Positions 9,523 to 50,866 of a DNA stretch of 64,000 bases are shown here, piece after piece. Positions within the stretch are counted from its first letter, which is position 1. Every line of letters begins with the position of its first letter. The notes under the pieces were generated by a model. The model ran no database searches. It saw only the letters and a program-made list of their open reading frames with translations, and was not told the DNA's origin. Location of the stretch: positions 1 through 64,000 of IMG/VR virus record IMGVR_UViG_3300030041_000009; one strand, written 5' to 3'. The position numbers were made by a program, and so were the translations under genes.

Positions 9523-10455
9523 TTATTCATATTTTTGTTTAAAAATGAATTTTTTATGAATATAAAGAAGTAAATCTTTTATATTAATTGTATCTGATTT
9601 GTTATTTTTAAATTCATTTATAGATAAAATATCATCCAAAACTTTATATCCTTCTATTATATATTCATCAGATTTAGTAATAAAATATTTTTTCCAATTT
9701 TCAAAAAATATAAATATATCATTTTTATCTGCACATAAATTACCACCAAAATAATTTATAAAAATATTTACTTTATCTATAATATCTTGCTCATTAATTA
9801 ATTTATTATAATCAAATGATTTTAAAATATTAAAAGATTTATACATGTAAGAATCATGATATAACCTATATAATTCTTCTTTAGAACACTTACAATTTAT
9901 AAACATCTCCCATATCATAGTATTTCTAGCTATTAATTCGTGTTCTAATGATAAATAAATTAATTGTAAAAAATCTATAAAATATTTATTGCTTTCATTT
10001 TTAAGTAACTCAGTATAAAATAAAGAATTTGTGAATGATTTCATATCACTTTCTTCATTTATAGTGTAAACATCATAGATATGTCTTATTTCATGACTTA
10101 TAACTGAACATAATTTATCTACATTTAAATTTATATCATCAATTATAATTGGTATTATTGTTCTATCTTTTCCTGTTACTAAATCATTTATATTTACATT
10201 TGAATAGTAAATAATATCTTTATCCTCATATCTTATTTCAGAATTCAATTTGTTAAATTTAACATCTAATTCTATGATCAAATTACAAAATTCTAATGAA
10301 TTTAAATCTATATTTTTTTTAAATGATTTCGTTTGATTGCCTATAATTTGCCTTATTTCATTAAATAACTTTTTTAATTCATCTGGAATTTCTTTATTGA
10401 ATGATTCATATGTTTTTATGTATTTATTCCATAAATTTTTATTTAATATTTTCAT
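9523..10455 (-). CDS. HExxH (gluzincin-like) metallopeptidase, paralogue 1
   Basis: SHEIRH...YLSLEHELIAR. Confidence 0.7.
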   Translation of the reverse strand: MKILNKNLWNKYIKTYESFNKEIPDELKKLFNEIRQIIGNQTKSFKKNIDLNSLEFCNLIIELDVKFNKLNSEIRYEDKDIIYYSNVNINDLVTGKDRTIIPIIIDDINLNVDKLCSVISHEIRHIYDVYTINEESDMKSFTNSLFYTELLKNESNKYFIDFLQLIYLSLEHELIARNTMIWEMFINCKCSKEELYRLYHDSYMYKSFNILKSFDYNKLINEQDIIDKVNIFINYFGGNLCADKNDIFIFFENWKKYFITKSDEYIIEGYKVLDDILSINEFKNNKSDTINIKDLLLYIHKKFIFKQKYE

Positions 10456-10537
10456 ATAAAGTTTTTATTTATATATAAAAAGATAATAAATCTAATATTA
10501 ATTTTTAATATATAAACGAAATAAAATTTTTAAAATT

Positions 10538-11452
10538 ATGAAATATGTAAAAACATTTGAATTATATCGTGACTATGATATAGATTCTGTTGGTAATCTT
10601 GCTGTTGGTAATCTTGGTGGCTATCCTAATAATAAAAAACAATTATTAGCTTATATAGAAGCTGGCGGCGATATTGATGTTATAGATAAAAATGGAAACA
10701 CTCCTTTAATTAGATCTGTTACAAATAGCAAGAGTGAACTGACAAATATTTTAATTAAAAGTGGAGCAGATTTAAATATTCAAAATAATAATGGAGAAAC
10801 AGCATTAATGAAAGCAACAAAAAATAGAGATGTCATGAGATACATTAGTTTATTGATAGATGCTGGTGCAGATTGGAATATAGAAAAATATGACAAATTT
10901 TTATCATCTGTAGAAAATCCTATCTCTTATAGAGACAAATTATTAGCTAATATTGATTTTTTTGAGATGTTAACACCAAAATATCAAGAATTAACAAAAG
11001 AAAAATATCCAGAAAAATATAACTATTATTTAAGTAAAAAAGAAAGTTCAAATTCAAATTCAAATTCAAATTCACAGAATAATAAAGGAGATACAGCATT
11101 AATTTATGCAGTGAAAGATAGAAACATTAAACGTGTAGAATCTTTAATAAAATCTGGTGCAAATTTGAATATACAGAATAATAAAGGTGAAACAGCATTA
11201 ATTATTGCTGCTCGTTATCTAAATATGAATATAATTTATAAATTGATAGAAGCTGGATCAGATTGGAATATAACTAAATATAAAGATAATACTATTCTTT
11301 CATTTAATTCTATTAATGGTGGTAAACCTTATACGCCGAGAGGTAAATTTTATGAAGAAAAAGATTTTTTTGAAATATTATCACCAAAATATCAAGAAAT
11401 ATTAAAAGAGAAATATCCAGAAAAATATGCTAAATATTTGGCAAAAAAATAA
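10538..11452 (+). CDS. Ankyrin-repeat protein, internally duplicated, CTS-like leader
   Basis: GNTPLI/GETALM/GDTALI/GETALI repeats; duplicated DFFExLxPKYQExxKEKYPEKY; (AATTCA)n linker. Confidence 0.85.
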   Translation: MKYVKTFELYRDYDIDSVGNLAVGNLGGYPNNKKQLLAYIEAGGDIDVIDKNGNTPLIRSVTNSKSELTNILIKSGADLNIQNNNGETALMKATKNRDVMRYISLLIDAGADWNIEKYDKFLSSVENPISYRDKLLANIDFFEMLTPKYQELTKEKYPEKYNYYLSKKESSNSNSNSNSQNNKGDTALIYAVKDRNIKRVESLIKSGANLNIQNNKGETALIIAARYLNMNIIYKLIEAGSDWNITKYKDNTILSFNSINGGKPYTPRGKFYEEKDFFEILSPKYQEILKEKYPEKYAKYLAKK

Positions 11453-11530
11453 TATTCAAATTGAAAAATAAAAAAAGCCAGAACTAATCTGACTTTTTTA
11501 TTTAAAAAGATTAATATCATTTAATATCAT

Positions 11531-12094
11531 TCAATTTAAAATATTAAATAATATATATTCATTTGACATTATCAACTTAAATGAATAATTTCCATAATCT
11601 AAATTTTCAAGTTCAATTAAATATGAACTATCGCCGTATTTTGTAGCTTTATATTCAATTGTGTTTGGATTTTTTGATTCACCTCCACCAAAAACACTAC
11701 CAGTTGCTATTACAATAGATAGATATTTTTCACCTTCTGGTTCTAATTTTATAATCTTTATAATAGTAGTAGGATCAATTGTATTATTAAAACATTTAAT
11801 GATAAATTTATTGTTTTTATTTTTGAATGTGTATGAACCATTATCATGTGATAAAAATCTCAATCTTATTGTAGCTTTACCAGCAAATAACCCAACATAT
11901 GGTATATAAGATGCAGCATTTGCATTATTTTTATATGTTGGTATTTGTTTTTTTAATAATATACCGTCGCCAATTGTGTCATTGACATATACAACATTAT
12001 TTAAAAATTCAGGTTCTTTTATTTTTATTGTTTGTGTGAAAGAATTAATGCTAAAAATAATTAACATTATTAAAAATAATATATTTTTTTTCAT
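11531..12094 (-). CDS. Secreted/periplasmic protein with signal peptide
   Basis: MKKNILFLIMLIIFSINSFTQ Sec signal with +1 Gln, typical of Bacteroidota. Confidence 0.65.
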   Translation of the reverse strand: MKKNILFLIMLIIFSINSFTQTIKIKEPEFLNNVVYVNDTIGDGILLKKQIPTYKNNANAASYIPYVGLFAGKATIRLRFLSHDNGSYTFKNKNNKFIIKCFNNTIDPTTIIKIIKLEPEGEKYLSIVIATGSVFGGGESKNPNTIEYKATKYGDSSYLIELENLDYGNYSFKLIMSNEYILFNILN

Positions 12095-12273: not shown

Positions 12274-13116
12274 TTATTTTTTAAAATTATTAAAATCAGA
12301 TATATATTTATTATAATCAATAACTTTTGATTTATTATATGTATTTGAAACATAAGTCTCAAAAATTTCCCAGTCTTTTTCTATTTCATTCAAAATTCTT
12401 TCAGAATTTTTTAAAAAAACATCTGATTTTAATTTAAATATTTTAAACCAGAAATTTAGCCAAGTTTCAATACTATTTGAAGTTATTGTTTTAACATCGT
12501 TTTTAATAAGTATATCATTAAAATCATCAACTTCTTTTTGTTTTAATTGTGAAACAAGAATACTCATTTTTATATTTTTTATATTATCATATAATTTATA
12601 TGTTTCCCAATCTTTTAATCTTAATATAGCATCATCTTTTGAACATCTACCTTCACTTTTAATATAAATATAAGTTTGAGCAACATTAGCATTAACTTCA
12701 TTGTCCAATGTTTTATAAAAAATATCAGTAATAAATTCCATTGCATTAGACATAGAATAATTTTTAAATTTTAATAAAGATGTTTTTATTTTATTATATT
12801 TTGGATAGTCCTTATCTCCAATACCTAAAATTTCTATAACATGAGTTAGCTCATGCGATATATTTTCCTTAACTCTATTTTCATTACCATTTGTTGGTAT
12901 TCCAATATTAACTATAATATTATTAGGTTTAATAATTTTAATGTTTGAGTAATAACTATTTATATTGTTAAAAATTATTGTAATATCTCTATATCCAATA
13001 TCATCACGTCCAAATTTTAATATGTGAGATGAATATGAATTATTAATAAATAATTTCCATATATTGTTTACTTCGTTCTTTATTATATCTGATATACCTT
13101 TACCCTCATTTAACAT
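12274..13116 (-). CDS. HExxH metallopeptidase, paralogue 2
   Basis: LNEGKGIS leader; SHELTH...YKTLDNEVNAN. Confidence 0.7.
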   Translation of the reverse strand: MLNEGKGISDIIKNEVNNIWKLFINNSYSSHILKFGRDDIGYRDITIIFNNINSYYSNIKIIKPNNIIVNIGIPTNGNENRVKENISHELTHVIEILGIGDKDYPKYNKIKTSLLKFKNYSMSNAMEFITDIFYKTLDNEVNANVAQTYIYIKSEGRCSKDDAILRLKDWETYKLYDNIKNIKMSILVSQLKQKEVDDFNDILIKNDVKTITSNSIETWLNFWFKIFKLKSDVFLKNSERILNEIEKDWEIFETYVSNTYNKSKVIDYNKYISDFNNFKK

Positions 13117-15783: not shown

Positions 15784-17655
15784 TTAGTGAACTTCTTCGA
15801 AATCCACGTCATTTATGTTTTCAGATTCATCTTTATTAGTTGATGTACTTTCATTAGTTGATTGATTATTATTCTCTTCGTAAAGCTTAGAACTTATATT
15901 TTGCCAAGTATCATTCAATTCTTTACTATATTTATCAATATCATCCAGATTTTGAGTTTTGTGAGCTTCTTTAAGATTATCAAGCTTAGAATTCAATTCA
16001 GTTTTATTTGATTCATTCAATTTATCGCCATATTCTTCAATTTGTTTTTCAGTTTGAAAAATCATAGCATCTGCTTGATTAAGTTTATCAATCTTTTCTT
16101 TTTCTTTTTTATCTGATTCCGCATTTTGCTCAGCTTCCATCTTCATTTTTTCAATTTCTTCTTTTGTTAAAGATGATTTACCTTCTATTCTAATATCATT
16201 AGATTTACCAGTTGCTTTATCAACTGCTTTAACTGTCAAAATTGAATTGCTATCTAAACTGAATGTAATTTCAATCTGTGGTGTGCCTCTACGAGCAGGT
16301 GGAACATCAAGTGAAAATGTGCCTAAATGTTTATTGTTTTTGTATAGAGGTCTATCTCCAGTACAAACATTTACCTGTACGCTTGGTTGTGAATCTGATG
16401 CTGTACTAAATACTTGACTCTTAGATGTCGGGATCGTAGTATTTGCGGGAATCATGATAGTAGCAATTTCACCCATTGTCTCAATAGAAAAGTTCAACGC
16501 TGTTACATCAAGTAATAATATATCTGTATTATCTCCATTTAATACAGAACCTTGAATAGCGGCTCCAGATGCAATTGCAGTATCAGCATTTAGAGATTTA
16601 TTTGCTTTTTTACCAAAGTATTTTTCAATACTTTCTACCAAATAAGGTATCCTGGTGCTACCCCCCACTAAAATTATATCATCAAATTGTGAAATTTGTT
16701 TGTTACTTTTCTTAAGTGATGACATAATTAATTTCATTGTTTTATCAACATAAAATTGAATTAATTGCTCAAATTTAGCACGAGTAATAATTTTATTTAA
16801 ATGTCGTGGTTGTCCATCTACCGCCGTGATGTACGGTAAGTTGATTTCAGTTTGTGTTACACTAGATAATTCTATTTTTGCTTTTTCTGCGGATTCAGTA
16901 ATACGTTGTAGTGCCATTGAATCTTTACGAATATCTACACCAGTTTCTTTTAAAAATTCTTCAGAAACATAATCAACAATTGCATCATCAATCAAATTTC
17001 CGCCTAAATCTAAATTACCGTCTGTTGATAGTACTTCATATAAACCATCTGATACCGTAATTGCTGAGCTATCCGTTGTACAACCACCAGCATCTATGAC
17101 CATATATAGTTTATCTGTCTTATCTTTAATATTTAATGCTGCTGCTGTTGGCTCTGAAATAATTCTATCTACTTGAAACCCAGCTATTTCACCTGCTACC
17201 TTAGTGCAACTTCTTTCATCCGAATTGAAATAAGCTGGAGTCGTTATAATTACCGAGTCTATTTTACAAGATAGATAATCTTCTGCTGTTTTTTTCATTT
17301 TTTGAAGAATCATTGCTGAAATTTCTTCTGGCGAATATACTCTATCACCAATTTTTACTGCTGCCTTACCATTATTATCAACTATATCATAAGGACGTTT
17401 TAGATGTTTAACTTCATCATATGTTCTACCAATAAGTCGTTTAATATTAAAAATGGTATTTTTAGGATTTAATGCTGCTTGGCGTTTAGCAGACTCTCCA
17501 ACTTTAATTTCTCCTGTTTTTTGATCAAATGCTACGATAGAAGGAGTTGTTAAATTTCCTTCTGCGTTTGGTATAACAACTGCTACACCTCCCTCAATGA
17601 TGCTTACTACCGAATTGTATGATCCAAGATCTACTCCAATAATTTTTTTACTCAT
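15784..17655 (-). CDS. dnaK: Hsp70 chaperone DnaK (divergent)
   Basis: GVDLGSYNS, TPSIVAF, TTPAYFN, EPTAAA, LVGGSTRIP, PQIEITF, C-terminal DVDFEEV. Confidence 0.95.
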   Translation of the reverse strand: MSKKIIGVDLGSYNSVVSIIEGGVAVVIPNAEGNLTTPSIVAFDQKTGEIKVGESAKRQAALNPKNTIFNIKRLIGRTYDEVKHLKRPYDIVDNNGKAAVKIGDRVYSPEEISAMILQKMKKTAEDYLSCKIDSVIITTPAYFNSDERSCTKVAGEIAGFQVDRIISEPTAAALNIKDKTDKLYMVIDAGGCTTDSSAITVSDGLYEVLSTDGNLDLGGNLIDDAIVDYVSEEFLKETGVDIRKDSMALQRITESAEKAKIELSSVTQTEINLPYITAVDGQPRHLNKIITRAKFEQLIQFYVDKTMKLIMSSLKKSNKQISQFDDIILVGGSTRIPYLVESIEKYFGKKANKSLNADTAIASGAAIQGSVLNGDNTDILLLDVTALNFSIETMGEIATIMIPANTTIPTSKSQVFSTASDSQPSVQVNVCTGDRPLYKNNKHLGTFSLDVPPARRGTPQIEITFSLDSNSILTVKAVDKATGKSNDIRIEGKSSLTKEEIEKMKMEAEQNAESDKKEKEKIDKLNQADAMIFQTEKQIEEYGDKLNESNKTELNSKLDNLKEAHKTQNLDDIDKYSKELNDTWQNISSKLYEENNNQSTNESTSTNKDESENINDVDFEEVH

Positions 17656-18611: not shown

Positions 18612-20006
18612 TTAAAACTTTTTCATTTTTTGATAAGAAATAGCATTTCTTTCATTGCTACGTTGTTTATCTTTCTTTTTTTGTTCTTTTCTATCTTTCC
18701 ATGAAGTACCTTCAGATTTATCTTTGATGTTTAAGATTGGTTTAATTTTATCAAGAATTAATGCAGTAGGTTCAATAGCTTTTTCAATCATTTCTGAGTT
18801 TTTGTAAGCAAATGGAGATTCATCAATTGTACTTTTACATACAGATGTTGAATAAACATTTTTCATTACTCTCTGAAAATCTTTTAAATCAATTGACTCT
18901 TTTGCTTTTGATCTTGACATCAATCTACCACTACCATGCGGAGCTGAATTATTCCAGTCTTCATTCGATTTCCCTTCACATATAAGTATTCCATCTCTCA
19001 TATTGAATGGTATAATCATTTTTTCTCCAAGATAAGATGATATTGCTCCTTTTCTTATGATAAAGTCTTTAAAGTCGACATAGTTATGTATTGAATTTAT
19101 TTCTTCATCAAATTTTTTGATATTTAATGCTTTTTTTATCAAAGATAACATAGTTTTTCTATTCCATAGAGCATATTGTTGTGCAAAAATCATATCAAAT
19201 AGATATCCAATAAGATTTTCACCGTCTAAATATTCTTTATTAATATTAAGACTATATCTTGTTCTTAAATCTTTTATTTTTTTATCAATATCAGATTTTG
19301 GATAAGTGTTCATAACAATATCATCTAATTCCATATTATATTCTTTGGTAGCAACAAATACTTTACCTCTTGCTACATTAGTCCAATATTCAGCAATTTT
19401 CAAACCAAAATTTCTTGAGCCAGAGTGAACTGTTATCCAATAATCATTAGTTTTATCTGATTTGCCAAGTTCAATAAAGTGATTGCCTCCTCCTAATGTA
19501 CCAATTGATTGAAAAAATTTACCTTCATCCATATTAATATCTTTCAATTTAGCTGTTAACCATTTTTCATTATATGTTGGTGACTCATAAGAAGTTCCAA
19601 ATTTCTCATTAAATTTTGCAGCAAATTTATCAGCAATTACTTGTACATCATCAAAAGGAATATTTTTGAATACTATATCTTCATGCATATCAAATCCCAT
19701 AGGAACATTTTCACGTATCAGATTATCAATTTTCTCTAAATCTAATGAAGTTTTACCTGAAAATCTTGCAGACAACATGCCACATCCGATATCTGTTCCG
19801 ATCGTACTTGGTTTGATGTATTTTCCTAATTCCATGGAAAATCCAATGCAGATATCCGATCCAACATGTGCATCTGGCATTATTCTAATTTTCAATCCAT
19901 TAGATGTTTCTGAGTTTATAACATTGTATATTTGAGTAAATACTCCTTCTTCAACTTCATCTATAAATATTTTAGCATCTGTATATTTACCTTTTAATTC
20001 TATCAT
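18612..20006 (-). CDS. rtcB: RtcB RNA 3'-phosphate/5'-OH ligase
   Basis: MPDAHVG, DIGCGM, GTLGGGNHFIE, VHSGSR, HNY, RKGA, PHGSGR, DESPFAYK. Confidence 0.95.
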   Translation of the reverse strand: MIELKGKYTDAKIFIDEVEEGVFTQIYNVINSETSNGLKIRIMPDAHVGSDICIGFSMELGKYIKPSTIGTDIGCGMLSARFSGKTSLDLEKIDNLIRENVPMGFDMHEDIVFKNIPFDDVQVIADKFAAKFNEKFGTSYESPTYNEKWLTAKLKDINMDEGKFFQSIGTLGGGNHFIELGKSDKTNDYWITVHSGSRNFGLKIAEYWTNVARGKVFVATKEYNMELDDIVMNTYPKSDIDKKIKDLRTRYSLNINKEYLDGENLIGYLFDMIFAQQYALWNRKTMLSLIKKALNIKKFDEEINSIHNYVDFKDFIIRKGAISSYLGEKMIIPFNMRDGILICEGKSNEDWNNSAPHGSGRLMSRSKAKESIDLKDFQRVMKNVYSTSVCKSTIDESPFAYKNSEMIEKAIEPTALILDKIKPILNIKDKSEGTSWKDRKEQKKKDKQRSNERNAISYQKMKKF

Positions 20007-26864: not shown

Positions 26865-28258
26865 TTATTTTATTGTTTTGTATTCTATATATTTTTTATA
26901 AAAAATGTCGTGATATATACTATTAAAATTTTTAGCAGATTTCATGTTTTGGGTTAAATGATTATCTGTTTCAGTTCTCAAATCATTTAACATTTTTATG
27001 CCTTGTTCATTCTTTCCATTTTTAAAATAATTATTAGCAGTTTCATCTAATAGTTTAGATTGTATATTAAGATAATTAACTAATTCAGTTTCAGCATTTT
27101 TATCTTGTGTTATTCCGTTTTCTGAATATCCAGCATAATCATCATCATTATTTTCGTTGTTTTCATTAACGAACATATCAAAAATCTTTAAGTGATTCAT
27201 ACATTTATTTTTTTTTTATATACTATATATATTATTTTTTATTTGTTTTTTCTTCACCGCAAATATCAATTTTAATTTTTTCTAAATCTTTAGTTGCACC
27301 TTTTCCTTTTGTCCAATATTTGTTTACATTATCAAAAAATTCACTTTTCTTTTCATCTGATAATTTAGCAGGAGATTTAACATCATAACAATCAAGTATG
27401 AATTTAAAATATTCTCTATATTCTATTTGTAAATCTGATAATTTTTCATTTAATGATAAACTTTCATTATATTGTTTGAAATTTTTAATTTTATTCATTG
27501 ATATTATTAGTTTTTTATATATATATTAAATAATAAAAATCATTTTTTATTATTTTAATGTAAATTGTCTTTTAATTAAATTTCCTTTTAATTTAACAGA
27601 TTTTTTAGTACCATCTTCAAAATAAATTATAATCTCAAAATTATCAAAAATTAAACCAAAGTCTTGATATTCAATCATATCATAACTACTTGATAGAATG
27701 ACAACATTTTTATTATGATAAAATCCTTTTCTTCCTATATAATATTCTTTAAACATTTATAAATTTAATTTATCTTGGATTAATTCTATTCGCAACTTGC
27801 ATCATAGAATTATATCTTGCTTTTTCAAACATTTCTAATGATACATAATCAGTATTAGTGAAATCTACTGTTTCATTTAAACTTTGACGTTCTTGCGCTT
27901 GTTTAACTTCATTTAGTCTTTCATCATGAAGTTTTTGCATAACTTCATTTAATTTATTTTCTTTTGCTTCTTGTTTAACTTCATTAATATTAAATCCATT
28001 TACTTTTGTTTCAATGTTAAATTCATTAATGTTAAAGTCTTGTGAGTATTCTTGACGTCTTACTTCATTTATATTTTGTTGACTATAATTACTATAATTA
28101 GTATTATAATTAGTATAATCAGGAGTTTCTTTTAACATTTGTCCATTAAAAGAATTATCATTACCTCTTAATTGCTCGTATGTGTAATCTGTTGTTTCTA
28201 TTTTTTTAGCATTTACTTGTTTGAATAAATCTAAATACGATTGATCATAATATTCCAT
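26865..28258 (-). CDS. Four late-type hypothetical ORFs (26865, 27232, 27550, 27770)
   Basis: CTS-like leaders MNHLKIFDMFVNE and MNKIKNFKQYNE; TAATATATA motifs upstream. Confidence 0.6.
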
Positions 28259-41435: not shown

Positions 41436-42293
41436 TTAATAATATCTATATTTTTCATTCATATTTCCTTGATCCTTAATAACTTCATTAATTATAGATA
41501 ATAACTTTTTTTTATTTTTAATACATTTATTTTTAAATATATTTTCCCATTTTTTAAAATAATCTATTAATGGTAAATTTGAATCTATAAAATCTAAATT
41601 GTAATTATTTTTAATAATTTGTTCATTTAAATGATTAATTAAAACTATTAACGCTGGCTCTGATATTTTTTCTAACATATAATTATAAAATTTTTCAGCA
41701 TTAAAACTATCCAATTCTTCATATTTTTTCCATGATTCACATTCTTTAATTTTTTCTAATAAAATATTTTTATCTATGCTATTAAATTTCATTAAAAAAT
41801 GATACGCTTCTGAAACTCTAGCGTTTAATTCATTATCCAAAGATAAATAAATAAAATATGTAAAATCATTTAAAGGTGTCTCGATTTTGTTAAAATTTGT
41901 TATAATTTTTTGTAAATTAACATGAGTAGGTAAATCTCTTTGATTCTTAACCAAATTATAAAATTCTAAAACATGAGTCAATTCATGAGATATTTTACTT
42001 TTTATGATGTAATCATCAGTTCCAATAGGAACAAAAAAGTATAAATTTATATTTTTTAATATATTATTTGAAAAAGTATAATTTATAGGATCAAATTTAG
42101 CATAACAATCTAATCTTTTTTCAAAATTAATAGTCAATTTAATATTATATAAAGGAAATAAAATATCTTTTAAATCTAAAAAAATAATCTTATCTTCATA
42201 GTCTAAAAAATTAGTATAAATAATATCAGAATATGTTTTAATAATGTTAGAAATACCATTACCTTCATTGATAAAATTTAAATACTTTTTCAT
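41436..42293 (-). CDS. HExxH metallopeptidase, paralogue 3
   Basis: MKKYLNFINEGNGIS; SHELTH...YLSLDNELNAR. Confidence 0.7.
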   Translation of the reverse strand: MKKYLNFINEGNGISNIIKTYSDIIYTNFLDYEDKIIFLDLKDILFPLYNIKLTINFEKRLDCYAKFDPINYTFSNNILKNINLYFFVPIGTDDYIIKSKISHELTHVLEFYNLVKNQRDLPTHVNLQKIITNFNKIETPLNDFTYFIYLSLDNELNARVSEAYHFLMKFNSIDKNILLEKIKECESWKKYEELDSFNAEKFYNYMLEKISEPALIVLINHLNEQIIKNNYNLDFIDSNLPLIDYFKKWENIFKNKCIKNKKKLLSIINEVIKDQGNMNEKYRYY

Positions 42294-43264
42294 ATTGGTA
42301 TATTAAAATTTTCATTTAATAAATTTTTAAAAAATATAGGATCATATAAATACATTCTATTAAAATCTTTATGAAATATTGCAGATGGTATCGATGAGAA
42401 CTCTAAATTACCCTCATTAATCCTATTATCAACACTTGATATTTTACTTTTTATATATTTTAACCTAATATCAAATAATTCTTTAAGATCAATTAAAAAT
42501 TTATCATTATTAGTTTCTTTCCATATAGATTTATTTAATTTCTTAATATATTTCTTATTTTTTGAATAATAATAAATACTCTGATATATTTTATCTTTTA
42601 ATAAATTTAATTCAATTTCTTCTATATTACTAAGCTTTTTTATATTAAATTTTTCAATATCTTTAATATTATCAAATATTTTATTGTATTTTTTACCAAT
42701 CTTACTAAAATAATAATATTGATGTATTTGAGCATCGATTTCATGACTTAAAGTTTTATATAATAATTCAATTATATTATTAATATAATCTGATTTAAAA
42801 TTGTTTCTAAATTGACTCAAAATAACTCCGATAGACCAAGAAGATGACCTAAATTTATTATTTTTAGAAATATTGTAATATTGAAAAATGTGTAAACATT
42901 CATGTAAAATGACAGAATCTATATAATCATTAAAATATATCTCATCTTTATCAGAAATATAAATATCTAAAACTATTTCAATATTAGATAAAATATCATT
43001 ACTCATTTTAGAGTTATTAAATCTAGCAACAGAGTTGCAAACATTTTCTTTATATTTATATAAATTAAATATTACTTTAATATTATCTAATTTTAAGTCA
43101 TTTTCAGATAATTCATAAGTAAACTCATTACTTAAATTAATATTATTAAAATTAATTAATATATTATGCAAATCTTTTGATATAGTCTCCTGTAAAATTT
43201 CACAAGAATCAGATATCGATTTTCTTTCTAATAAATATGTGTTGTAATTGTTTAAATAATCCAT
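42290..43264 (-). CDS. HExxH metallopeptidase, paralogue 4 (start MDYLNNY)
   Basis: LHECLH...YKTLSHEIDAQ; the longer track ORF extends into the tRNA. Confidence 0.7.
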   Translation of the reverse strand: MDYLNNYNTYLLERKSISDSCEILQETISKDLHNILINFNNINLSNEFTYELSENDLKLDNIKVIFNLYKYKENVCNSVARFNNSKMSNDILSNIEIVLDIYISDKDEIYFNDYIDSVILHECLHIFQYYNISKNNKFRSSSWSIGVILSQFRNNFKSDYINNIIELLYKTLSHEIDAQIHQYYYFSKIGKKYNKIFDNIKDIEKFNIKKLSNIEEIELNLLKDKIYQSIYYYSKNKKYIKKLNKSIWKETNNDKFLIDLKELFDIRLKYIKSKISSVDNRINEGNLEFSSIPSAIFHKDFNRMYLYDPIFFKNLLNENFNIPI

Positions 43265-43273
43265 AATATAAAT

Positions 43274-43345
43274 TTGAGCAAGTGGTCTGATTTGAACAGA
43301 ATCCTTTAACTGGAAGCTAAACGCATTAACATATGCTACCACTGC
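43274..43345 (-). tRNA. tRNA-Gly(TCC)-like (copy 2, identical)
   Basis: Inside the 88 bp perfect direct repeat 43271-43358 = 41358-41445. Confidence 0.7.
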
Positions 43346-43707: not shown

Positions 43708-45309
43708 TTATTTTTTTAAAGTATATATAAATTTTAAAAATCCAGAATCATATATGCGATATACCTTCCGTTCTAACATAATTTCATGCTCTGTTTTATT
43801 TATATCAAATCCTTCTGTTACTAATTTATTTTTACGAAAATTACATTTATTATGCCTAATATTATCAATAATATATTGATAATCTGGCTTAACTTTATCG
43901 ACAAAATCAAATCCTATTTTTTTATATAAATTAATTTGACTAAAACTTCTATCAAAATAACATACTATTTCTTTCGCACTATATTTATTTATAAAATAAT
44001 TTAATAACGTAATTTCACTATCAATAATATTAGTATTTATTTTATTACTAAAACTTATCATCTCATAATTATTATTCTTAATATTAAATGTCATTAAACT
44101 AATTAATTCATTACCTAAATATAAACCAATTTTTATATTAGATTTAATATATCCATGTATATCATTTTTTTCTAAATAACTTTTAATTAAATTTATATCT
44201 AAAACTTCTCTTATTTCACAATCTTTTGAATCAATTACGTTTTCAAAAATATTTAATTTACTTAATATTATAGATTTTATAATTTCATTATTATAAATCC
44301 AGTCATCTTCATAAATATGAATCAATTGAATGCCTTGTTTTTCACATTCTTCAGTTTTATTTAAATGATAATCTTTATCTTTATTTAATTCATTGTGCCA
44401 CCATAAACCATTAAATTCAAATGCTAATTTCAAATTAGGTAAATAAATATCTAATTCTAAAGGATTTAAAATTTTTCTATCATTCAAAATTATCTCATCA
44501 TTATAATTTTCTTTAATAAAACCTAATAATTGTAACTCTAACCCACTAACATTTTTTGAAATTGGATTGCATTCTGTACATAATATTGTTTTATTATTTA
44601 TCCTATTCCACAATAATTTATAATCAATATTAAAATGATGATCTTTATGTAAATCACATTTAAATTCATATTGACCATTTGATAAATATCCAACAAATAT
44701 ATCTTTTCTATCTCTAATAATTTCAGATTTATATAATCCTTTATCAAAATTTTTCTTAAAACTAATAAATTGATTTTCTCTCATTTTAATAGATATTTCT
44801 GCATTTTGACTAGCATATTCTACTCCATATCTTTCTAAATTCGTTGATTTCATTTTATATGGATTTGTATAGTTAGCATCTCCATATTTTTCTAATTTAC
44901 TTACATGTCCTTTTTTGTTAATTTCTTTAGATTGCTGAGGATATTCGACACCAAAATTTTTTAAACAAGTTTCTACTTTTTTATCTTTAATAATTTGAGA
45001 ATTTGAAACATTTTCTACTCCATATTTTTCTAAATTTGTATTTTTTGATTTTTGTTCAGAACATTTTCTACTACAAGCATAATATGTTGTTGAATTTTTT
45101 GTGTTATAATTATATCTACTATATGAAATAATAGTTTCTTCGCCACAAACATCACATTTTGCTTTAATTTTTGATACACTTCTTGTAGGTAAATCTATTG
45201 CAAGTATAGAAATAATTTCATTTCCTCCTTTTACTTCATACCCTTTTTCTTTATAATATTTAATTTGATTATTAGATATTTTTACATCGACATACTTTGT
45301 CAAAATCAT
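43708..45309 (-). CDS. Hef-like homing endonuclease (Vsr/PD-(D/E)xK type)
   Basis: CDVCG, KYGV repeats, ELDIYLP...AFEFNGLWWH...IHIYEDDW. Confidence 0.75.
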   Translation of the reverse strand: MILTKYVDVKISNNQIKYYKEKGYEVKGGNEIISILAIDLPTRSVSKIKAKCDVCGEETIISYSRYNYNTKNSTTYYACSRKCSEQKSKNTNLEKYGVENVSNSQIIKDKKVETCLKNFGVEYPQQSKEINKKGHVSKLEKYGDANYTNPYKMKSTNLERYGVEYASQNAEISIKMRENQFISFKKNFDKGLYKSEIIRDRKDIFVGYLSNGQYEFKCDLHKDHHFNIDYKLLWNRINNKTILCTECNPISKNVSGLELQLLGFIKENYNDEIILNDRKILNPLELDIYLPNLKLAFEFNGLWWHNELNKDKDYHLNKTEECEKQGIQLIHIYEDDWIYNNEIIKSIILSKLNIFENVIDSKDCEIREVLDINLIKSYLEKNDIHGYIKSNIKIGLYLGNELISLMTFNIKNNNYEMISFSNKINTNIIDSEITLLNYFINKYSAKEIVCYFDRSFSQINLYKKIGFDFVDKVKPDYQYIIDNIRHNKCNFRKNKLVTEGFDINKTEHEIMLERKVYRIYDSGFLKFIYTLKK

Positions 45310-45371: not shown

Positions 45372-46856
45372 TCATAAAGGAGTTCCCTCTAATTTTTTAA
45401 GCTCATTTTGTAATTTATCAAGTTCTTCATGTTTTTCCATCATCACGTTTTTCCACTTTTTTCTATCAGAATATACTTCTCTCATTACACTACTAACAAC
45501 TCCTTCCTCATTCTTAAATACTGATCCATTTAAAGTTATGATATCATCAGGCTCAATTGTTAATTGATGTCCATTAAATATGGAATAATCTTTACCTTTT
45601 ACTTTTTGACCTTTATATGAATCTGCAGATATGTTAAATTCTCTCATAGTAGTAGGATACAAGGAACTAAAGTCAAAACAGCATGTCCATTCTGCCATAC
45701 CTCTTACAGGTTCTTTAACCCATCCTCCTTTTATAGATTCAGTTTCAGTATCTCCGTATTCACTATCTTCATTTCTAACAAGAACAATATTTTTTTGATC
45801 TCTTAATTTTTCTCTTAAAATTCCTTCTGTTAATGCAAGAGTTGAAATTGCATCTTTAATCTTAATTTTACCCAATACAGCCATGCCATAAAGTATGTCT
45901 ACATATTTCATTTTTTTATGTATCTGTTGAACTAAGCAACTATCTACAGCATTATAGAATACAAATTTCTTATAGTCCTCTTTATGCAATTTTTTTAAAT
46001 CTCCATCGTAATTAATTTTCTTAATTTCTTTTCCTAGTAATTTTTCAGAAGCGAAATCTAAAGATAAACTTTCCTTTACTTTAACTGATTGATCCCATTT
46101 TTTAAATAATTCCATATAATCAACTATAACCCTATGCGCTGGCATTTCTGCGTAACTTGGATTAATAGCATTAGGAGGATTAAATGGTTTATTAAGTTTT
46201 TTTGTGAATGAGGCAACCTCAGGTTCAAGTCCAATTCTTCTTGCTCTTGCAACTAAATATGTCCAGTCATAATTAATGAAATTCCAACCAGTTATTACTG
46301 GCATTTTAGGAACTAATTTGTTAAAAAAACTATGAAGCATATCATATTCAGTTTTGTACTGAACATATTTAAATTTATAATTTGTTCCAAATTTTTGAAA
46401 ATGAGTATTGATATCATTACCAATTGATTCAATTTGTGCAGCATCTAAAAACTGAGTTCCAATTACCAACACTTTATCTTTATTTACTATTGATATTGTT
46501 TGTATCTCACCCTCAGCAAGTTGTGGTTGTGGTTTACCAGTATTAAGAATCTCGTTCTCAATATCAACGAAGAATATATCTGGTTCTGCATATGAATATA
46601 TTTCATCTCGTTCTTCTTTATCAAAACTATCTATGAAATCATAAATGGAATACCGATTTGGGTATTTTGTATAAATCTCTTTAACATTTTCTCCTGACCA
46701 TGTGACAAATCTACCACTTTTTTCTTTATCATCATCAGTAGTTTTTATAAATTTTGTTGGGCGACTCCAATTTTTATATTTTAGTTTGATCTGACCAGAA
46801 CTATCTATATATGAGATAATTAGGTTATTATTTTTATATTCAGTATCTACAATCAT
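45372..46856 (-). CDS. Family B DNA polymerase, N-terminal subunit only (exonuclease plus motif A)
   Basis: VDIE (ExoI), GWNFINYD (ExoII), YNAVD (ExoIII), GGWV, DFSSLYP; motifs B and C absent. Confidence 0.9.
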   Translation of the reverse strand: MIVDTEYKNNNLIISYIDSSGQIKLKYKNWSRPTKFIKTTDDDKEKSGRFVTWSGENVKEIYTKYPNRYSIYDFIDSFDKEERDEIYSYAEPDIFFVDIENEILNTGKPQPQLAEGEIQTISIVNKDKVLVIGTQFLDAAQIESIGNDINTHFQKFGTNYKFKYVQYKTEYDMLHSFFNKLVPKMPVITGWNFINYDWTYLVARARRIGLEPEVASFTKKLNKPFNPPNAINPSYAEMPAHRVIVDYMELFKKWDQSVKVKESLSLDFASEKLLGKEIKKINYDGDLKKLHKEDYKKFVFYNAVDSCLVQQIHKKMKYVDILYGMAVLGKIKIKDAISTLALTEGILREKLRDQKNIVLVRNEDSEYGDTETESIKGGWVKEPVRGMAEWTCCFDFSSLYPTTMREFNISADSYKGQKVKGKDYSIFNGHQLTIEPDDIITLNGSVFKNEEGVVSSVMREVYSDRKKWKNVMMEKHEELDKLQNELKKLEGTPL

Positions 46857-47275: not shown

Positions 47276-47277
47276 TA

Positions 47278-48492
47278 ATGAGAAAATTAACTACAAATGA
47301 ATTTATAGAAAAATCAAATGAGATACATAATAATAGATATGATTATTCAAATACTATTTATACTGGTTGTAAAAATGATGTCGAAATAATTTGTTCAATA
47401 CACGGAAAATTTACTCAAAATGCTCAATCTCATTTAAATGGGCATGAATGTACGAAATGTTCTGGTCATTATATATATTCTAAAATAGAATTTATTGAAA
47501 AAGCTAATATTGTACATAATAAATATGACTATAGTTTAACGAATTATATAAATAGTAGAAATAAGATTAAAATAATATGTCCGATTCACGGAGAATTTAT
47601 CATAAGGGCGAATAATCATTTACTTGGAATAGGATGTTCAAAATGTAGTGGAAAAAATAAAAATATATCTGAAATAATTGATGATTTTAATAAAATATAT
47701 GATTATAAATATGATTATAGTTTAGTTAATAATTATAAAGATAAACATTCTATAATTAAAATAATATGTCCAATTCACGGAGAATTCGAAAAAATTGCAT
47801 ATGCTCATAACAATGGTCACGGATGTCCAAAATGCGGCATAAATACATTATCTACTTCTAAATTTATAGAATTATCAAAATTAAATCATAATAATAAATA
47901 TGATTATAGTTTAGTTAAATATAATGGTGTTATGAATACTGTAAAAATAATATGTCCAATACATGGTATGTTTGAACAGATTAGTAGATTTCATTTAAAT
48001 GGTAGTGATTGTCCAAACTGTTCAGAATCTAAAGGTGAAAAAGAAATCAGAAATTATTTAGATAATAATAATATAACTGAGAATGAATTTAATAAATTAT
48101 TTAAAAAATATTATAAACAATGTTACATATATGATGCTTCTATAATGTTAGATAAATTTAATTTAAAAAATTTTAGTAGATTAAATTCTAATAATTTGGT
48201 TATATTTTTTAATGTTTTAAATGATAAAAAGAATTTATTGAAAATACATCAAAAAAGTGGAAAATTTAAAAAATTTTTATTAGATATTTATGATGTGTTA
48301 ACTAACCGTTATTTTAATGATTATTATTATAAAAAAATAGATAAGAGTATTAAAATAGAAAATTTGGATAATATATTAGAAATTTATGATAAAAGATTTA
48401 AGAATGCATCAAAAACTATTAAAAATAAGTTATCTAAATTATATAGTTTAATATTAGATGAATTAAAACATGAAAATTTAATAAAAAATTAA
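47278..48492 (+). CDS. Chimera: four C[PS]IHG zinc repeats (HEG type) fused to a metallopeptidase C-terminal domain
   Basis: C[PS]IHG..F...H..G..CxxC four times, SKGE, then about 140 aa matching the end of 49934-50866. Confidence 0.75.
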   Translation: MRKLTTNEFIEKSNEIHNNRYDYSNTIYTGCKNDVEIICSIHGKFTQNAQSHLNGHECTKCSGHYIYSKIEFIEKANIVHNKYDYSLTNYINSRNKIKIICPIHGEFIIRANNHLLGIGCSKCSGKNKNISEIIDDFNKIYDYKYDYSLVNNYKDKHSIIKIICPIHGEFEKIAYAHNNGHGCPKCGINTLSTSKFIELSKLNHNNKYDYSLVKYNGVMNTVKIICPIHGMFEQISRFHLNGSDCPNCSESKGEKEIRNYLDNNNITENEFNKLFKKYYKQCYIYDASIMLDKFNLKNFSRLNSNNLVIFFNVLNDKKNLLKIHQKSGKFKKFLLDIYDVLTNRYFNDYYYKKIDKSIKIENLDNILEIYDKRFKNASKTIKNKLSKLYSLILDELKHENLIKN

Positions 48493-48936: not shown

Positions 48937-48948
48937 AAAATTAAATAT

Positions 48949-49893
48949 ATGATAAATAATTACGATGAATATATATTAGAAAATAGAGGAATATCAAATA
49001 TTATAAAACAATATACAGATATAATATTTATAGAAATTAAAAAAAATATAGAAGATAATATTTCAGATGAAATAATATTAGATTTAGATGCTCAGAATGA
49101 TTTTATTTTAAAAAATATGTTAATTGATTATAAATTATCTAATAGAAATTATGGATTATTTGATTCATCTCATATTATATTTAAAGATGATATATTATAT
49201 AATGTTATAATTAGAATTGAAATAGATCAAAATAAATTCAACGACGTAAAAATAAAGGAAATAATAACTCACGAATTGACTCACATTTTAGAATATTTTA
49301 GAATAAAACAAAATGATGTAAAATTAAATTTAAATATTAACGTTGATCCGAACTATATTTCAGTTCGTAAATCTATAAACTATATTAATTTTGATAATGA
49401 GTGGAATAGTTTTAAAACTCTGATTTATTTATCTTTAGATACTGAATATAACGCAAGGATTGCACAACTTTATCAATTTTTAATAGATTTTAATTCAAAA
49501 GATAGTGATTTTTTAATGAATAAATTTTTAAATAGTGAAACTTATAAATGTTACAGTTATTTAGATGAATTTAATGCAGAACTATTTTTGATAAAATTAA
49601 AAATGAATATTGGAGAAAATACATTAATATCGGAAATTAATAGATTGAATCAGGAATTAATAAATAGTGGTGTAAACAAACTTAATGGTTATAAATTTAT
49701 AAAAATTGTTGATATAGATAATGTTGAAGCATATTTAAACAATTGGAAAAATTTATTTAAGAATAAAAATAAAAAACACATAAAAAAAATAAATTTGATT
49801 ATCAAAGAAGTTATATCCGATGTTAAAGATAATAAAAAATGGTGTGATAATTTTGAAATTGATGAGAGTTATAAAAATAGATTATTAGAATAA
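48949..49893 (+). CDS. HExxH metallopeptidase, paralogue 5
   Basis: MINNYDEYILENRGIS; THELTH...YLSLDTEYNAR. Confidence 0.7.
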   Translation: MINNYDEYILENRGISNIIKQYTDIIFIEIKKNIEDNISDEIILDLDAQNDFILKNMLIDYKLSNRNYGLFDSSHIIFKDDILYNVIIRIEIDQNKFNDVKIKEIITHELTHILEYFRIKQNDVKLNLNINVDPNYISVRKSINYINFDNEWNSFKTLIYLSLDTEYNARIAQLYQFLIDFNSKDSDFLMNKFLNSETYKCYSYLDEFNAELFLIKLKMNIGENTLISEINRLNQELINSGVNKLNGYKFIKIVDIDNVEAYLNNWKNLFKNKNKKHIKKINLIIKEVISDVKDNKKWCDNFEIDESYKNRLLE

Positions 49894-49933
49894 ATTATAT
49901 AATTAAAAAATAAATTGAATTATAAATAAAATA

Positions 49934-50866
49934 ATGATAATAAAAAATAAAATATTTAATTTAATAGTAGAGAAAGTTGGAATTGAGTTGGATATTAAAG
50001 ATTTAAGTGATCAAATTTATAAATTGATTATAAATGATAAAAAATTATATTATAAATTTGATGGTAAGTTATTTGATGTTAGAATTATGCACATTAATTC
50101 AATACTGATATTTATATCAAACAATGATTCTTCATTTGATGCATCATCTTCAACATTAACTGAAAAAGGATTTGATATTATATTGAATATAAATAAGAAT
50201 GATATAGAAACTAAAGTTATACATCACGAATTAAATCATGCTTTAAAATTTTATATGATAGGTAAAGAAAAATATATAGATAAAACTCGTGAATTAAAAA
50301 GTTATAAAATGAGTAGAACTTTTATTAAAAACCCAGATATTGAAGATTTTATAGATTTGGTTTATTATTCTGATTTAGAAGAAGTTGATTCTTTCATTAG
50401 TGAAGCATATTATGAAATTATGGAAAATTTTAAAAAAATTGGTAGAGTTATAACTAATATAGAATTTAATAAATATTTTAATTCATTTCACAAAGATACT
50501 TACATATATAAAATGTCTGATGTATTATATAATTATAATTTTAAAATATTAAAAAAATATAATTCTGATATGCTGGTTGTATTTTTTAATGTTTTAAATG
50601 ATAAAAAAAATTTATTAATAATATCAAAAAAAAGTGGAAAATTTAAAAAATTTTTATTGAATATTATAAATTTATTTAATGATAAATATTATATGAGTTG
50701 GTATTATAGTAGAATAGATAAAAACATTAAAATTGAGAATTTAGATGAGATATTAGAAATATATGATAAAAGATTTAAAAGTGCATCAAAAACTATTAAA
50801 AATAAATTATCTAAATTATATAGTTTAATCTTGGAAGAATTAAAGAATGAAAATTTAATAAAATAA
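49934..50866 (+). CDS. HExxH metallopeptidase, paralogue 6
   Basis: HHELNH...YYSDLEEVDSF. Confidence 0.65.
   Translation: MIIKNKIFNLIVEKVGIELDIKDLSDQIYKLIINDKKLYYKFDGKLFDVRIMHINSILIFISNNDSSFDASSSTLTEKGFDIILNINKNDIETKVIHHELNHALKFYMIGKEKYIDKTRELKSYKMSRTFIKNPDIEDFIDLVYYSDLEEVDSFISEAYYEIMENFKKIGRVITNIEFNKYFNSFHKDTYIYKMSDVLYNYNFKILKKYNSDMLVVFFNVLNDKKNLLIISKKSGKFKKFLLNIINLFNDKYYMSWYYSRIDKNIKIENLDEILEIYDKRFKSASKTIKNKLSKLYSLILEELKNENLIK

Follow-up and report, generated by a model that had tools for sequence, protein, structure and literature searches.

Diverged zincin-type proteins of a Mahaphage-type huge phage share a leader resembling the T4 capsid targeting sequence

This study provides evidence from sequence comparison and structure prediction that six open reading frames (ORFs) of a huge phage encode a diverged family of zincin-type proteins, which begin with a leader that resembles the capsid targeting sequence of phage T4 and also heads unrelated proteins of the same genome. 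The ORFs lie in the first 64,000 nucleotides (the window) of the 256 kb virus record IMGVR_UViG_3300030041_000009, and are named here by their lowest coordinate. Reading the leader as a T4-type capsid-targeting tag appears to be the new point, and the explanation that we favour, at about even odds, is that the proteins are metalloproteases that are packaged in the head, processed, and injected into the bacterium with the DNA.

The six ORFs are homologous, with lengths of about 280–325 aa. On the minus strand lie g9523 (9523..10455; 310 aa; HEIRH at 10081-10095; ligand Glu at 9937-9939), g12274 (12274..13116; 280 aa; HELTH at 12841-12855; Glu at 12697-12699), g41436 (41436..42293; 285 aa; HELTH at 41973-41987; E155 at 41829-41831), whose structure was modelled, and g42290 (42290..43264; 324 aa; HECLH at 42890-42904; Glu at 42740-42742). 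The start of g42290 is most likely the ATG at 43264 rather than the GTG at 43342 given in the ORF list, and a 4-nt overlap makes g41436 and g42290 a probable operon. On the plus strand lie g48949 (48949..49893; 314 aa; HELTH at 49270-49284; Glu at 49444-49446) and g49934 (49934..50866; 310 aa; HELNH at 50225-50239; Glu at 50381-50383). As the preliminary description of this DNA had stated, every ORF carries one HExxH motif followed by Y-x-[ST]-x-x-x-E, with the Tyr 46–52 aa and the Glu 52–58 aa after the first His. The E-x-x-[GS]-I motif, which it had placed in most of the leaders, was found in five of the six, the exception being g9523 with the variant ...KTYE-SFNKEIP.

On these comparisons, the likeness among the six ORFs is homology, and chance is excluded. 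BLASTP related g41436 to g48949 (6e-27) and g12274 to g41436 (3e-9), and a profile built from the g41436/g48949 clade alone found g42290 (hhalign probability 97.6%, E 4e-12), g9523 (97.3%, E 2e-11), and g49934 (96.0%, E 4e-9). In an alignment of 121 diverse homologues, the sole invariant columns were H103, E104, H107, and E155 (g41436 numbering); Y149 was kept in 118 of them, and an N-A-R motif follows the ligand Glu. The earlier assignment of this Glu as the third ligand of a gluzincin site is strengthened by the invariance of HExxH and the downstream Glu, by the zincin order of the elements, and by the dominance of zincins among the weak structural neighbours. The predicted zinc protease family had no sequence match in Pfam, PHROG, NCBIfam, or the PDB, no Pfam, PHROG, or NCBIfam model describes it, and its homologues are named only "hypothetical protein", in line with the earlier remark that such a family had no described function. 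Among the 121 members there were 29 weak Pfam matches, 23 of which were to SprT-like, DUF2268, BSP, M76, PhageMetallopep, M56, or Tox-MPTase4, which we take to be zincin families.

Concerning the fold, the structure prediction proposed in the preliminary description yielded AlphaFold models with pLDDT values of 93.2 (pTM 0.90) and 89.8 and the zincin order of elements: a backing helix (residues 16-31), a beta-sheet (strands within 36-89), the active-site helix containing HExxH (94-116), and a helix with E155 at its start (153-169), preceded by the near-invariant Tyr. The N-terminal ~170 residues are modelled as a zincin-type metallopeptidase domain and the remainder as a helical domain. The pLDDT was 56-60 at residues 1-10 and exceeded 90 beyond them. 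An unbiased scan of the N-terminal domain against 48,161 PDB chains placed PprI/IrrE, lugdulysin, ACE2, CapP, VgrG2b, Wss1, lethal factor, neurolysin, deuterolysin, BlaR1, and abylysin near the top. The weak neighbours of the models were almost all zincins (IrrE/PprI, M3, HtpX, lethal factor, selecase), and all of the best 30 Swiss-Prot structural matches were HtpX. No single match was significant, since the best Z was 5.2 and TM-scores were at most 0.32 (Foldseek E at least 0.03). Non-peptidase HExxH folds, namely the ChlB HExxH oxygenase domain (8s5f), 1oz9 (AQ_1354), which we take to be YbeY-like, and MATCAP, were also among the neighbours. The metal motif of the family is well supported, and so is the predicted fold class at the level of element order and neighbour lists.

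The six ORFs had been described as highly diverged, which agrees with their pairwise identities of 20–37% and their six deep clades. The accompanying label of an expanded six-member family is misleading, as the six fall into supported, separate deep clades of an ancient set of at least seven. For each paralogue a separate orthologue exists in other genomes, with best observed identities of 56–83%, and related huge phages carry 0 to 7 copies, with no copy detectable in the 735 kb phage that is closest by PolB. The whole 256 kb record contains just the six; a seventh copy is carried, ~2.7 kb past its left end, by a contig that overlaps the record and encodes a g41436 protein 100% identical to that of the record. 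Judged by this divergence, the paralogue set is old and does not reflect a recent burst. A copy of the C-terminal helical module of the family also occurs at 48072..48492 (plus strand), in ORF 47278-48492, a neighbour of g49934 in which this module is fused to a zinc-ribbon-repeat (DUF723) protein outside the family. The module shares 66% protein identity with residues 173-310 of g49934 (the C-terminal 138 aa), and the DNA identity is 73% across 300 nt.

The leader itself, which the preliminary description had noticed, proved to be real; it fits the capsid targeting sequence of T4 as well as the [LI]-x-E rule of the prohead protease. Its consensus is M-K-x-[YF]-x-x-[FY]-[IL]-x-E, and its length is 4–23 residues across the family. 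In T4, residues 1–10 form the targeting sequence, with positions 4 and 7 serving targeting and 8 and 10 serving processing, and the prohead protease gp21 cleaves by the rule L/I-x-E (PMC9026906). T4 IPII and IPIII begin with MKTYQEFIAE|A, and the counterpart in g41436 is MKKYLNFINE (42264-42293). The other leaders are MDYLNNYNTYLLE in g42290 (43226-43264), MINNYDEYILE in g48949 (48949-48981), MIIKNKIFNLIVE in g49934 (49934-49972), and MKILNKNLWNKYIKTYE in g9523 (10405-10455), the least canonical among the six. A Glu anchors the leader (P0) in 105 of the 121 family rows, at position 9-13 in 53 rows. Of the 105 anchored rows, 82 have L or I at P-2, where the g9523 clade often has T, and aromatic or hydrophobic residues occupy P-3 and P-6. 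In one subfamily, the leader has shrunk to the four residues M-[LIV]-N-E (14 rows), as in g12274 (MLNE, 13105-13116; three codons before it stands an in-frame TAG); as these members lack T4 targeting positions 4 and 7, they may escape packaging. A high AT content biases the N-terminal regions encoded by this genome towards K, N, I, Y, and F, but it leaves the Glu unexplained.

The leader heads at least eight unrelated proteins in the phage genome, and its bearers are mutually unrelated once it is removed. The strict pattern was found at the N-terminus of seven of the 455 ORFs in the record, with ~0.3 expected, and among the 15 N-termini with the pre-motif, seven end in E and none in D. Outside the family, the window holds a candidate capsid-targeted ORF at 2068..2691 (plus strand, 207 aa) with the strict T4-type leader MKIKFEEFILE|S, a repeat-containing ORF adjoining g9523 at 8729..9388 (plus strand, 219 aa) with the looser leader MSRINKFDEFVNE|Y, and an ORF at 26865..27200 (minus strand, 111 aa) with the looser-type leader MNHLKIFDMFVNE|N. 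In a complete 640 kb relative, the pattern occurs on 21 ORFs, where ~1 would be expected, and E closes 21 of the 35 pre-motifs. The same relative encodes a head maturation protease (phrog_207, E 6e-26, with a weak Pfam S77 match), a Gp23-type capsid gene directly downstream of it (E 1e-25), and a large terminase. No prohead protease, capsid, or terminase gene was found in the 36%-complete record, and no gp21-type prohead protease or T4-type head gene in the contigs overlapping it; as the record is a fragment, it is the relative that supplies the connection with a gp21-type protease. The earlier suggestion that the proteins are injected is therefore a reasoned inference and no longer a guess, since the leader fits that of T4, is common to unrelated proteins, and recurs in the relative.

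The genes identify the source as a huge tailed phage, of Mahaphage type. The N-terminal part of its PolB is 55% identical to that of the 735 kb phage and 42-43% identical to those of 634-642 kb phages; these are the genomes of Mahaphages, with predicted Bacteroidetes hosts (PMC7162821). The CheckV completeness of the 256 kb record is 36%, the genome size is probably ~700 kb, and the host is probably a Bacteroidota bacterium. A giant eukaryotic virus (Nucleocytoviricota) was rejected, because the closest clusters of PolB are Uroviricota and the closest genomes are the 634-735 kb phages. The Capsid_NCLDV model gave no match either, although it was silent on the controls as well, so that this negative carries no weight as to absence.

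Based on these observations, we propose that the leader would carry the predicted protease into the scaffolding core of the prohead, where a gp21-type prohead protease would cleave behind the leader Glu according to the [LI]-x-E rule. The processed enzyme would remain within the DNA-filled head, enter the bacterium together with the ejected DNA, and cut proteins of the host that serve in defence or are targets of takeover, and the seven long-separated paralogues may each have different substrates. The notion of different host substrates derives solely from the deep divergence of the paralogues, and the idea that multi-copy zincin peptidases of jumbo phages are aimed at host proteins has already been published (PMC7824862, PMC5512222).

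The packaged reading has to be weighed against one in which the family consists of phage metalloproteases that stay in the cytoplasm and never enter the head, acting within the infected cell to take over the host, remove defence proteins, or process proteins of the phage itself, with the conserved N-terminus as no more than a structural or translational feature. The genes surrounding the family are replication and accessory genes (a split PolB, homing endonucleases, HSP70, PhoH), together with an ankyrin gene and genes without assignment, and no recognisable head module lies around the family genes, which counts against packaging; moreover, one clade retains merely M-[LIV]-N-E, and the SprT-like and ArdC-like peptidases that jumbo phages carry in multiple copies were proposed to act on host proteins with no need of packaging (PMC7824862). 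However, a Glu-ending leader on at least eight unrelated families, and on 21 ORFs of the relative, is far beyond chance and prefers E over D, it fits the experimentally defined targeting and cleavage positions of T4, and it is a low-pLDDT segment detached from the fold in the models. We consider the cytoplasmic explanation unlikely.

The leader evidence is equally compatible with proteins that are packaged but act in the capsid or its assembly, as accessory maturation peptidases trimming internal proteins or themselves, and similar roles were proposed by Iyer et al. for the conserved group 1 jumbo-phage zincin and for polyvalent-protein peptidase domains (PMC7824862, PMC5512222). Copy numbers that run from zero, as in the 735 kb phage, to seven among related huge phages are unlike a core assembly function, and the separate conservation of seven deep subfamilies points to a number of different targets, so that such a role seems quite improbable. 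Lowest of all we rate a zincin-like scaffold without a peptidase role, in which HExxH would serve other chemistry in a metal-dependent hydrolase, an oxygenase, or a DNA- or protein-binding inhibitor. The presence of 8s5f, 1oz9, and MATCAP among the neighbours, the binding of ssDNA by the top match IrrE/PprI (8sln), and the weakness of every structural match fit this explanation, whereas the invariant gluzincin catalytic set (the general-base Glu, the Tyr six residues ahead of the ligand Glu, and N-A-R after it) and the majority of true peptidases among the neighbours argue for a peptidase.

A broader proposal, which we regard as rather doubtful, is that in Mahaphage-type phages a T4-like leader sends a large arsenal into the capsid, including up to seven zincin proteases injected against different host targets. 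The arsenal would comprise at least 15 capsid-addressed proteins in this phage genome and at least 21 in the 640 kb relative. Leader-bearing precursors would be harmless in the producing cell until activated by the prohead protease, and each protease would destroy a distinct host defence or housekeeping protein within the first seconds of infection. If this is true, the leader would be a sequence key by which the ejected proteomes of uncultivated huge phages could be read from metagenomes.

Among known systems, the internal proteins of T4 (IPI, IPII, IPIII, and Alt, processed by gp21) offer the closest parallel for the leader. They share its key positions (MKTYQEFIAE compared with MKKYLNFINE, MKTYNKFVYE, and MKNYKHFLNE), the [LI]-x-E ending, and its occurrence on unrelated, fast-diverging proteins within one genome, and within the lineage, the 640 kb relative encodes both a gp21-like protease and a capsid protein of the Gp23 type. 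In contrast, the T4 proteins are small, basic, and without a peptidase fold, whereas the cargo here would be a zincin of 30–35 kDa in seven paralogues, in a genome ~4 times larger; packaging is demonstrated for T4 and is inferred for the family.

The zincins of polyvalent proteins and ArdC (Iyer et al. 2017, PMC5512222; González-Montes et al. 2020, PMC7213743) resemble the family in the HExxH and Glu helices on a minimal beta-sheet/helix core, in their location on invading DNA elements, in a predicted early anti-host action, and in their often multiple copies. A homologue of 1328 aa (P0058) with two family domains on one polypeptide adds to the likeness with polyvalent proteins, in which, however, the zincins are domains of giant multidomain proteins, unlike the stand-alone, leader-addressed family, which also lacks the ArdC-N domain. 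A SprT/Wss1/ArdC-type assignment was rejected, as the 121 homologues have no conserved third His after HExxH; the SprT-like model matched nine of the 121 with a best E of 2.8e-4, all under the curated cut-off.

The best structural neighbours are IrrE/PprI (8sln, 3dti), at a low Z of 5.2 over 100-103 aligned residues that include the HExxH and Glu helices, and CapP (7t5t) aligned with the catalytic domain at Z 4.3. The family differs from IrrE, ImmA, and CapP in that it lacks both a GAF or HTH partner domain and a neighbouring repressor gene, and its His-to-Glu spacing of 52–58 aa differs from that of IrrE (~27 aa). ImmA/IrrE (M78) was rejected, as Peptidase_M78 matched none of the six proteins with E up to 1 and none of the 121 members with E up to 0.01. 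M48/HtpX/Ste24 and the minigluzincins (selecase, abylysin) share a gluzincin site with a distant Glu helix, and structural alignment with selecase gave 19–22% identity; the family differs in having no transmembrane segments, the structural TM-scores were at most 0.32, and Peptidase_M48 had no match at the same E limits for the six proteins and the 121 members. The catalytic domain of anthrax lethal factor (M34; H686, H690, Y728, and E735) likewise has HExxH and then a catalytic Tyr shortly before a ligand Glu ~50 aa on, and its residues 600-750 matched the family at Z 3.7–3.8; this resemblance is solely one of motif spacing, with no sequence match and a different host and biology.

All six open reading frames that a preliminary description had named as an HExxH metallopeptidase family were found in the window sequence: g9523 (9523-10455, minus strand), g12274 (12274-13116, minus), g41436 (41436-42293, minus), g42290 (listed as 42290-43342, minus, most likely starting at the ATG at 43264), g48949 (48949-49893, plus) and g49934 (49934-50866, plus). 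As described there, each contains HExxH, present once, and a Y-x-[ST]-x-x-x-E; the Glu of the latter was measured to lie 52-58 residues past the first His. The E-x-x-[GS]-I ascribed to most of them is present near the N-terminus of five of the six. The proteins are as diverged as had been claimed, with pairwise identities of just 20-37%. Despite this low identity, their likeness is homology: BLASTP linked g41436 with g48949 (6e-27) and g12274 with g41436 (3e-9), and hhalign with a profile from the g41436/g48949 clade alone matched g9523, g49934 and g42290 at a probability of 96-98%.

The six genes are arranged as three pairs, one overlapping by 4 nt and another in tandem with 41 nt between, and are located amid replication-associated and mobile genes. 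g41436 and g42290 sit immediately downstream of a split family-B polymerase gene: the fragment at 45372-46856 (minus) encodes only the 494-aa N-terminal part (exonuclease domain and start of the polymerase domain) and is followed by a 533-aa homing endonuclease (43708-45309, minus; phrog_3339, E 4e-90), and the C-terminal half was not detected with PF00136 across the 256 kb record. The C-terminal 138 aa of g49934 (plus) share 66% identity with the end of an unrelated protein encoded next to it (47278-48492, plus), the DNA of the shared stretch being 73% identical over 300 nt; the N-terminal part of this neighbour is made up of a zinc-ribbon (DUF723-like) unit of ~186 nt repeated four times in tandem. 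The likeness suggests a recent module exchange and a C-terminal helical module that functions independently.

A profile search of 1.84 billion cluster representatives retrieved 734 proteins at E <=1e-3, of which 299 remained at E <=1e-10; the family representatives are nearly all 270-330 aa long. In an alignment of 121 homologues (g41436 numbering), H103, E104, H107 and E155 are the sole invariant columns, Y149 is kept in 118, and the ligand Glu is embedded in a conserved Y-L-[ST]-L-[DE]-x-E-[IL]-N-A-R block. Sequence searches of Pfam, PHROGs, NCBIfam and the PDB gave no match above threshold, and comparison with described families placed the proteins in none of them. When the 121 members were scanned singly against Pfam at E <=0.01, with about one false match expected, 23 of the 29 matches were to families taken as zincins (we count SprT-like, DUF2268, BSP, M76, PhageMetallopep, M56 and Tox-MPTase4 as such). 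The homologues are named "hypothetical protein" without exception, in agreement with the preliminary statement that no function had been described, and a protein family is defined that has a clear catalytic signature and no model in any library searched.

Two fused architectures, a 1328-aa protein with two domains and an odd fusion to a portal, hold few functional hints. The former (P0058, contig L081, 8001-11987) carries two family domains in a polyvalent-protein-like architecture, and its gene has DnaJ and FKBP genes on either side, on a 39 kb contig with amidase, NUDIX and RNase HII genes. The latter (P0045, L080 183-1454, on a 2.5 kb JGI contig) joins the family N-domain (residues 7-232) in frame with a P22-type portal fragment (E 1.4e-8), and an adjacent ORF carries the portal onward; this may be a chimera created in assembly or a true fusion, portal fusions having been taken elsewhere as a sign of virion packaging (PMC5512222).

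The AlphaFold2 model of g41436, built with the 121-member alignment, reached a pLDDT of 93.2 and a pTM of 0.90. It comprises two domains. The N-terminal one is alpha/beta and runs from helix 16-31 through strands within 36-89, a helix (94-116) bearing HExxH and two short helices to a helix (153-169) that opens with E155; the C-terminal one is all-helical, with a last helix of 43 residues. With the full model, Foldseek found nothing significant in the PDB, and a wide VIA-align scan was swamped by the C-terminal helices; therefore, residues 1-172 were modelled alone (pLDDT 89.8). When this N-domain was aligned exhaustively with 48,161 PDB chains, no match was strong (best Z 5.2), and the list was dominated by zincins: PprI/IrrE, lugdulysin (M30), ACE, ACE2, CapP, the VgrG2b effector domain, M3 oligopeptidases, Wss1, lethal factor, M1 aminopeptidases, deuterolysin, BlaR1 and abylysin. 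Re-examination of Foldseek's own candidates gave a like picture and added Ste24, SPRTN and selecase, the best 30 Swiss-Prot models were all HtpX, and Foldseek against the AFDB clusters returned just weak M48-like and M3-like matches. Close structural relatives (TM 0.62-0.84) were found in BFVD and the ESM Atlas, as uncharacterised viral proteins only. Weak rows for 3c18, KNTase and alarmone synthetases could be read as a nucleotidyltransferase fold, which was rejected at TM ~0.15-0.2 and with no nucleotidyltransferase motif in the family. The check proposed in the preliminary description, structure prediction plus Foldseek, thus yielded a zincin-type order of elements with mostly zincin neighbours, each match being weak, and from the models the fold class is concluded to be that of a predicted zincin, with a site of gluzincin type and only distant kin among characterised proteins.

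The N-termini of the family are strikingly regular as far as a Glu, after which a cut is predicted (marked by a slash), as in MKKYLNFINE/G, MKKYLKFITE/S, MKNYKHFLNE/S, MKTYNKFVYE/G and MINNYDEYILE/N. Over the 105 rows with this anchoring Glu, the residue two before it (P-2) is L or I in 82, P-3 is mostly F, Y, L or M and P-6 mostly Y or F; the Glu stands at position 9-13 in 53 rows. The T4 internal proteins IPII and IPIII both begin with MKTYQEFIAE/A, as read from the T4 record, and the T4 and family leaders have identical residue types at equivalent positions. Those ten residues are the T4 capsid targeting sequence, in which targeting depends mainly on residues 4 and 7 and processing on residues 8 and 10; the prohead protease gp21 cleaves after Glu in L/I-x-E, and the T-even internal proteins are diverse injected anti-defence proteins with the leader as their sole common feature (PMC9026906; PMC3012670). 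The related proteases of phiKZ and SPN3US also cleave after Glu (PMC5694885). In our models, packing is poor over the ten N-terminal residues (pLDDT 56-60), and past the Glu all values exceed 90. No report that connects huge phages or megaphages with capsid targeting sequences was found in a literature covered incompletely. The g9523 clade has an atypical P-2 residue, and the g12274 subfamily has mostly lost the leader, with M-[LIV]-N-E left; in the window genome a stop codon lies three codons upstream of the g12274 start. This subfamily may be an unpackaged branch, for which T4 ModA and ModB, relatives of the packaged Alt, offer a parallel.

If the leader is an address label, unrelated proteins of one phage should bear it, and they do. 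A strict pattern, ^M.{2,3}[YF]..[FY][ILV].E, occurs at the N-terminus of 7 of the 455 ORFs in the 256 kb record, against ~0.3 expected from its frequency elsewhere in those proteins, and five of the seven lie outside the family. A looser pattern matched 17 N-termini, whereas five control windows of equal width, placed further along those proteins, gave 1-5 matches each (~1%). Non-family bearers include the ORFs at window 2068-2691 (plus; MKIKFEEFILE/S) and at record 81931-82752 (MKTYLQYIKE/A, with an ExoX-like C motif), and the leader is also borne by record ORFs 80635-81018, 101381-101776, 101806-102507, 102518-103213, 148462-149196 (with a weak nucleotidyltransferase match), 151068-151541 and 223204-223497. 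Without their first 25 residues, the bearers are unrelated to the family and to one another, except for one paralogous pair, and no HExxH was found in the non-family bearers of the record. Among 15 N-termini of the record with the pre-motif, 7 end in Glu and 0 in Asp, the two residues being equally common. The pattern was replicated in G001, a complete 640 kb IMG/VR relative, where 21 ORFs bear the leader (~1 expected) and Glu closes 21 of the 35 pre-motifs; most leader-bearing ORFs of both genomes belong to no family.

Another bearer, at window 8729-9388 (plus), has an acidic D/E/F/Y-rich stretch and then three ~45-aa repeats (...K[TY]K..EF.KN...AY..A......D.LF...). A 247-aa ORF of G001 (217827-218570, plus) combines the leader MIFKFKEFILE/K with HExxH and is absent from the matches of the family profile; it could belong to the family as a remote member or represent a second leader-bearing zincin family. 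With 63 matches in the window, the T4 late promoter TATAAATA was not clearly enriched over the 49.5 +/- 6.9 expected; it lies 2-13 nt ahead of the ATG in four leader-bearing genes, 9523 (minus), 48949 (plus), 49934 (plus) and 2068 (plus). A looser TATATA stands within 50 nt upstream of 12 among the 20 leader or family genes, compared with 78 among 351 other ORFs (p 5e-4), a comparison confounded by AT-richness and by spurious ORFs in the control set. These elements may mark a shared promoter or initiation region.

The record, of which the window is the first 64 kb, is rated 36% complete at 256 kb, so that a genome of ~700 kb is expected. Its GC of ~21% and its cell-like genes, which in the window lie at 4234-5691, 15784-17655, 18612-20006, 36360-37694 and 60093-61919 and encode asparagine synthase, HSP70 (641 bits against the Pfam model), RtcB RNA ligase, a PIN-PhoH fusion and glutamine-dependent NAD synthase, together with ankyrin-repeat proteins (10538-11452, plus; 31151-31876, minus), homing endonucleases and an IS605 OrfB, at first suggested a giant eukaryotic virus. 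A Capsid_NCLDV search gave no match, but the controls were equally silent. That reading was rejected because the genomes nearest in polymerase are huge phages and relatives have T4-type head genes. The nearest clusters of the polymerase fragment are Uroviricota, and its tblastn identity is 55% with the 735 kb "uncultured phage" LR756501/LR756503 and 42-43% with phages of 642, 636 and 634 kb. Together, these phages make up the largest genomes reported by Al-Shayeb et al. 2020; they fall in the Mahaphage clade and have Bacteroidetes as predicted hosts (PMC7162821). G001, which has terminal repeats, encodes a large terminase and a Gp23-type major capsid protein, and the gene immediately upstream of the latter specifies a head maturation protease (phrog_207, E 6e-26; also a weak Pfam Peptidase_S77 match), whose N-terminus, MEKLKPILIVE, recalls the LIE-9 site of T4 gp21 (PMC9026906). 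No prohead protease, portal, capsid or terminase was found in the 256 kb record, itself a fragment, or in overlapping contigs. The polymerase affinities and the head genes of G001 indicate a huge tailed phage, its head-assembly core predicted to be of T4 type. The window also holds homing endonucleases (GIY-YIG and others) and an IS605 OrfB/TnpB-like gene (28541-29779, minus; OrfB_IS605 and Cas12f1-like TNB domain), has no tRNA genes and contains nothing that calls for an alternative genetic code. The ankyrin ORF at 10538-11452 lies between g9523 and g12274 and consists of two near-duplicate halves ending ...KYQE[LI][LT]KEKYPEKY.

The family varies in copy number: six in this record, three in G001, two and one in two further IMG/VR relatives, and two, two and one in the 634, 636 and 642 kb phages, with none detected in the 735 kb and 462 kb phages. 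The overlapping contig G006, whose g41436 protein is 100% identical, adds a seventh copy ~2.7 kb past the left end of the record (279 aa, MTYYDYLNE/GKGIS, with HELTH). In a maximum-likelihood tree of 121 members, the six window proteins fall in six distinct, well-supported deep clades, each with its own nearest orthologue in other metagenomes (best identities 83, 67, 65 and 56% in the four rows listed). Therefore, the set is a long-kept collection of ancient subfamilies, and its description as "expanded" does not hold in the sense of a recent expansion.

On the most parsimonious interpretation, the family members are capsid-internal proteins like those of T4. The leader would direct each protein into the prohead core, the prohead protease would remove it after the Glu, and the mature zincin would be kept with the DNA in the head and then ejected into the cell; speculatively, leader removal might be an activation step protecting the producing cell. 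The variable copy number among relatives and the deep subfamilies, each conserved on its own, are consistent with several distinct targets in the host. Comparable reasoning has been applied to jumbo-phage SprT-like and ArdC-like peptidases and to the peptidase domains that injected polyvalent proteins carry (PMC7824862, PMC5512222).

For huge phages, the T4-like leader with its terminal [LI]-x-E offers a simple sequence rule for candidate capsid-internal and ejected proteins. To our knowledge, huge phages of 500-735 kb are represented by metagenomes only, and the majority of their genes lack an assigned role. If the rule is true, the first-strike weaponry of uncultivated phages would be predictable from sequence, and a new source of specific proteases and cargo-loading tags would be available for phage engineering. 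Injected proteases would then join the T4 inhibitor IPI* and the ADP-ribosyltransferase Alt as pre-made anti-host effectors, and the proposed working of the family would combine two known kinds, the leader-addressed internal proteins of T4 type and the zincin peptidases of invading DNA.
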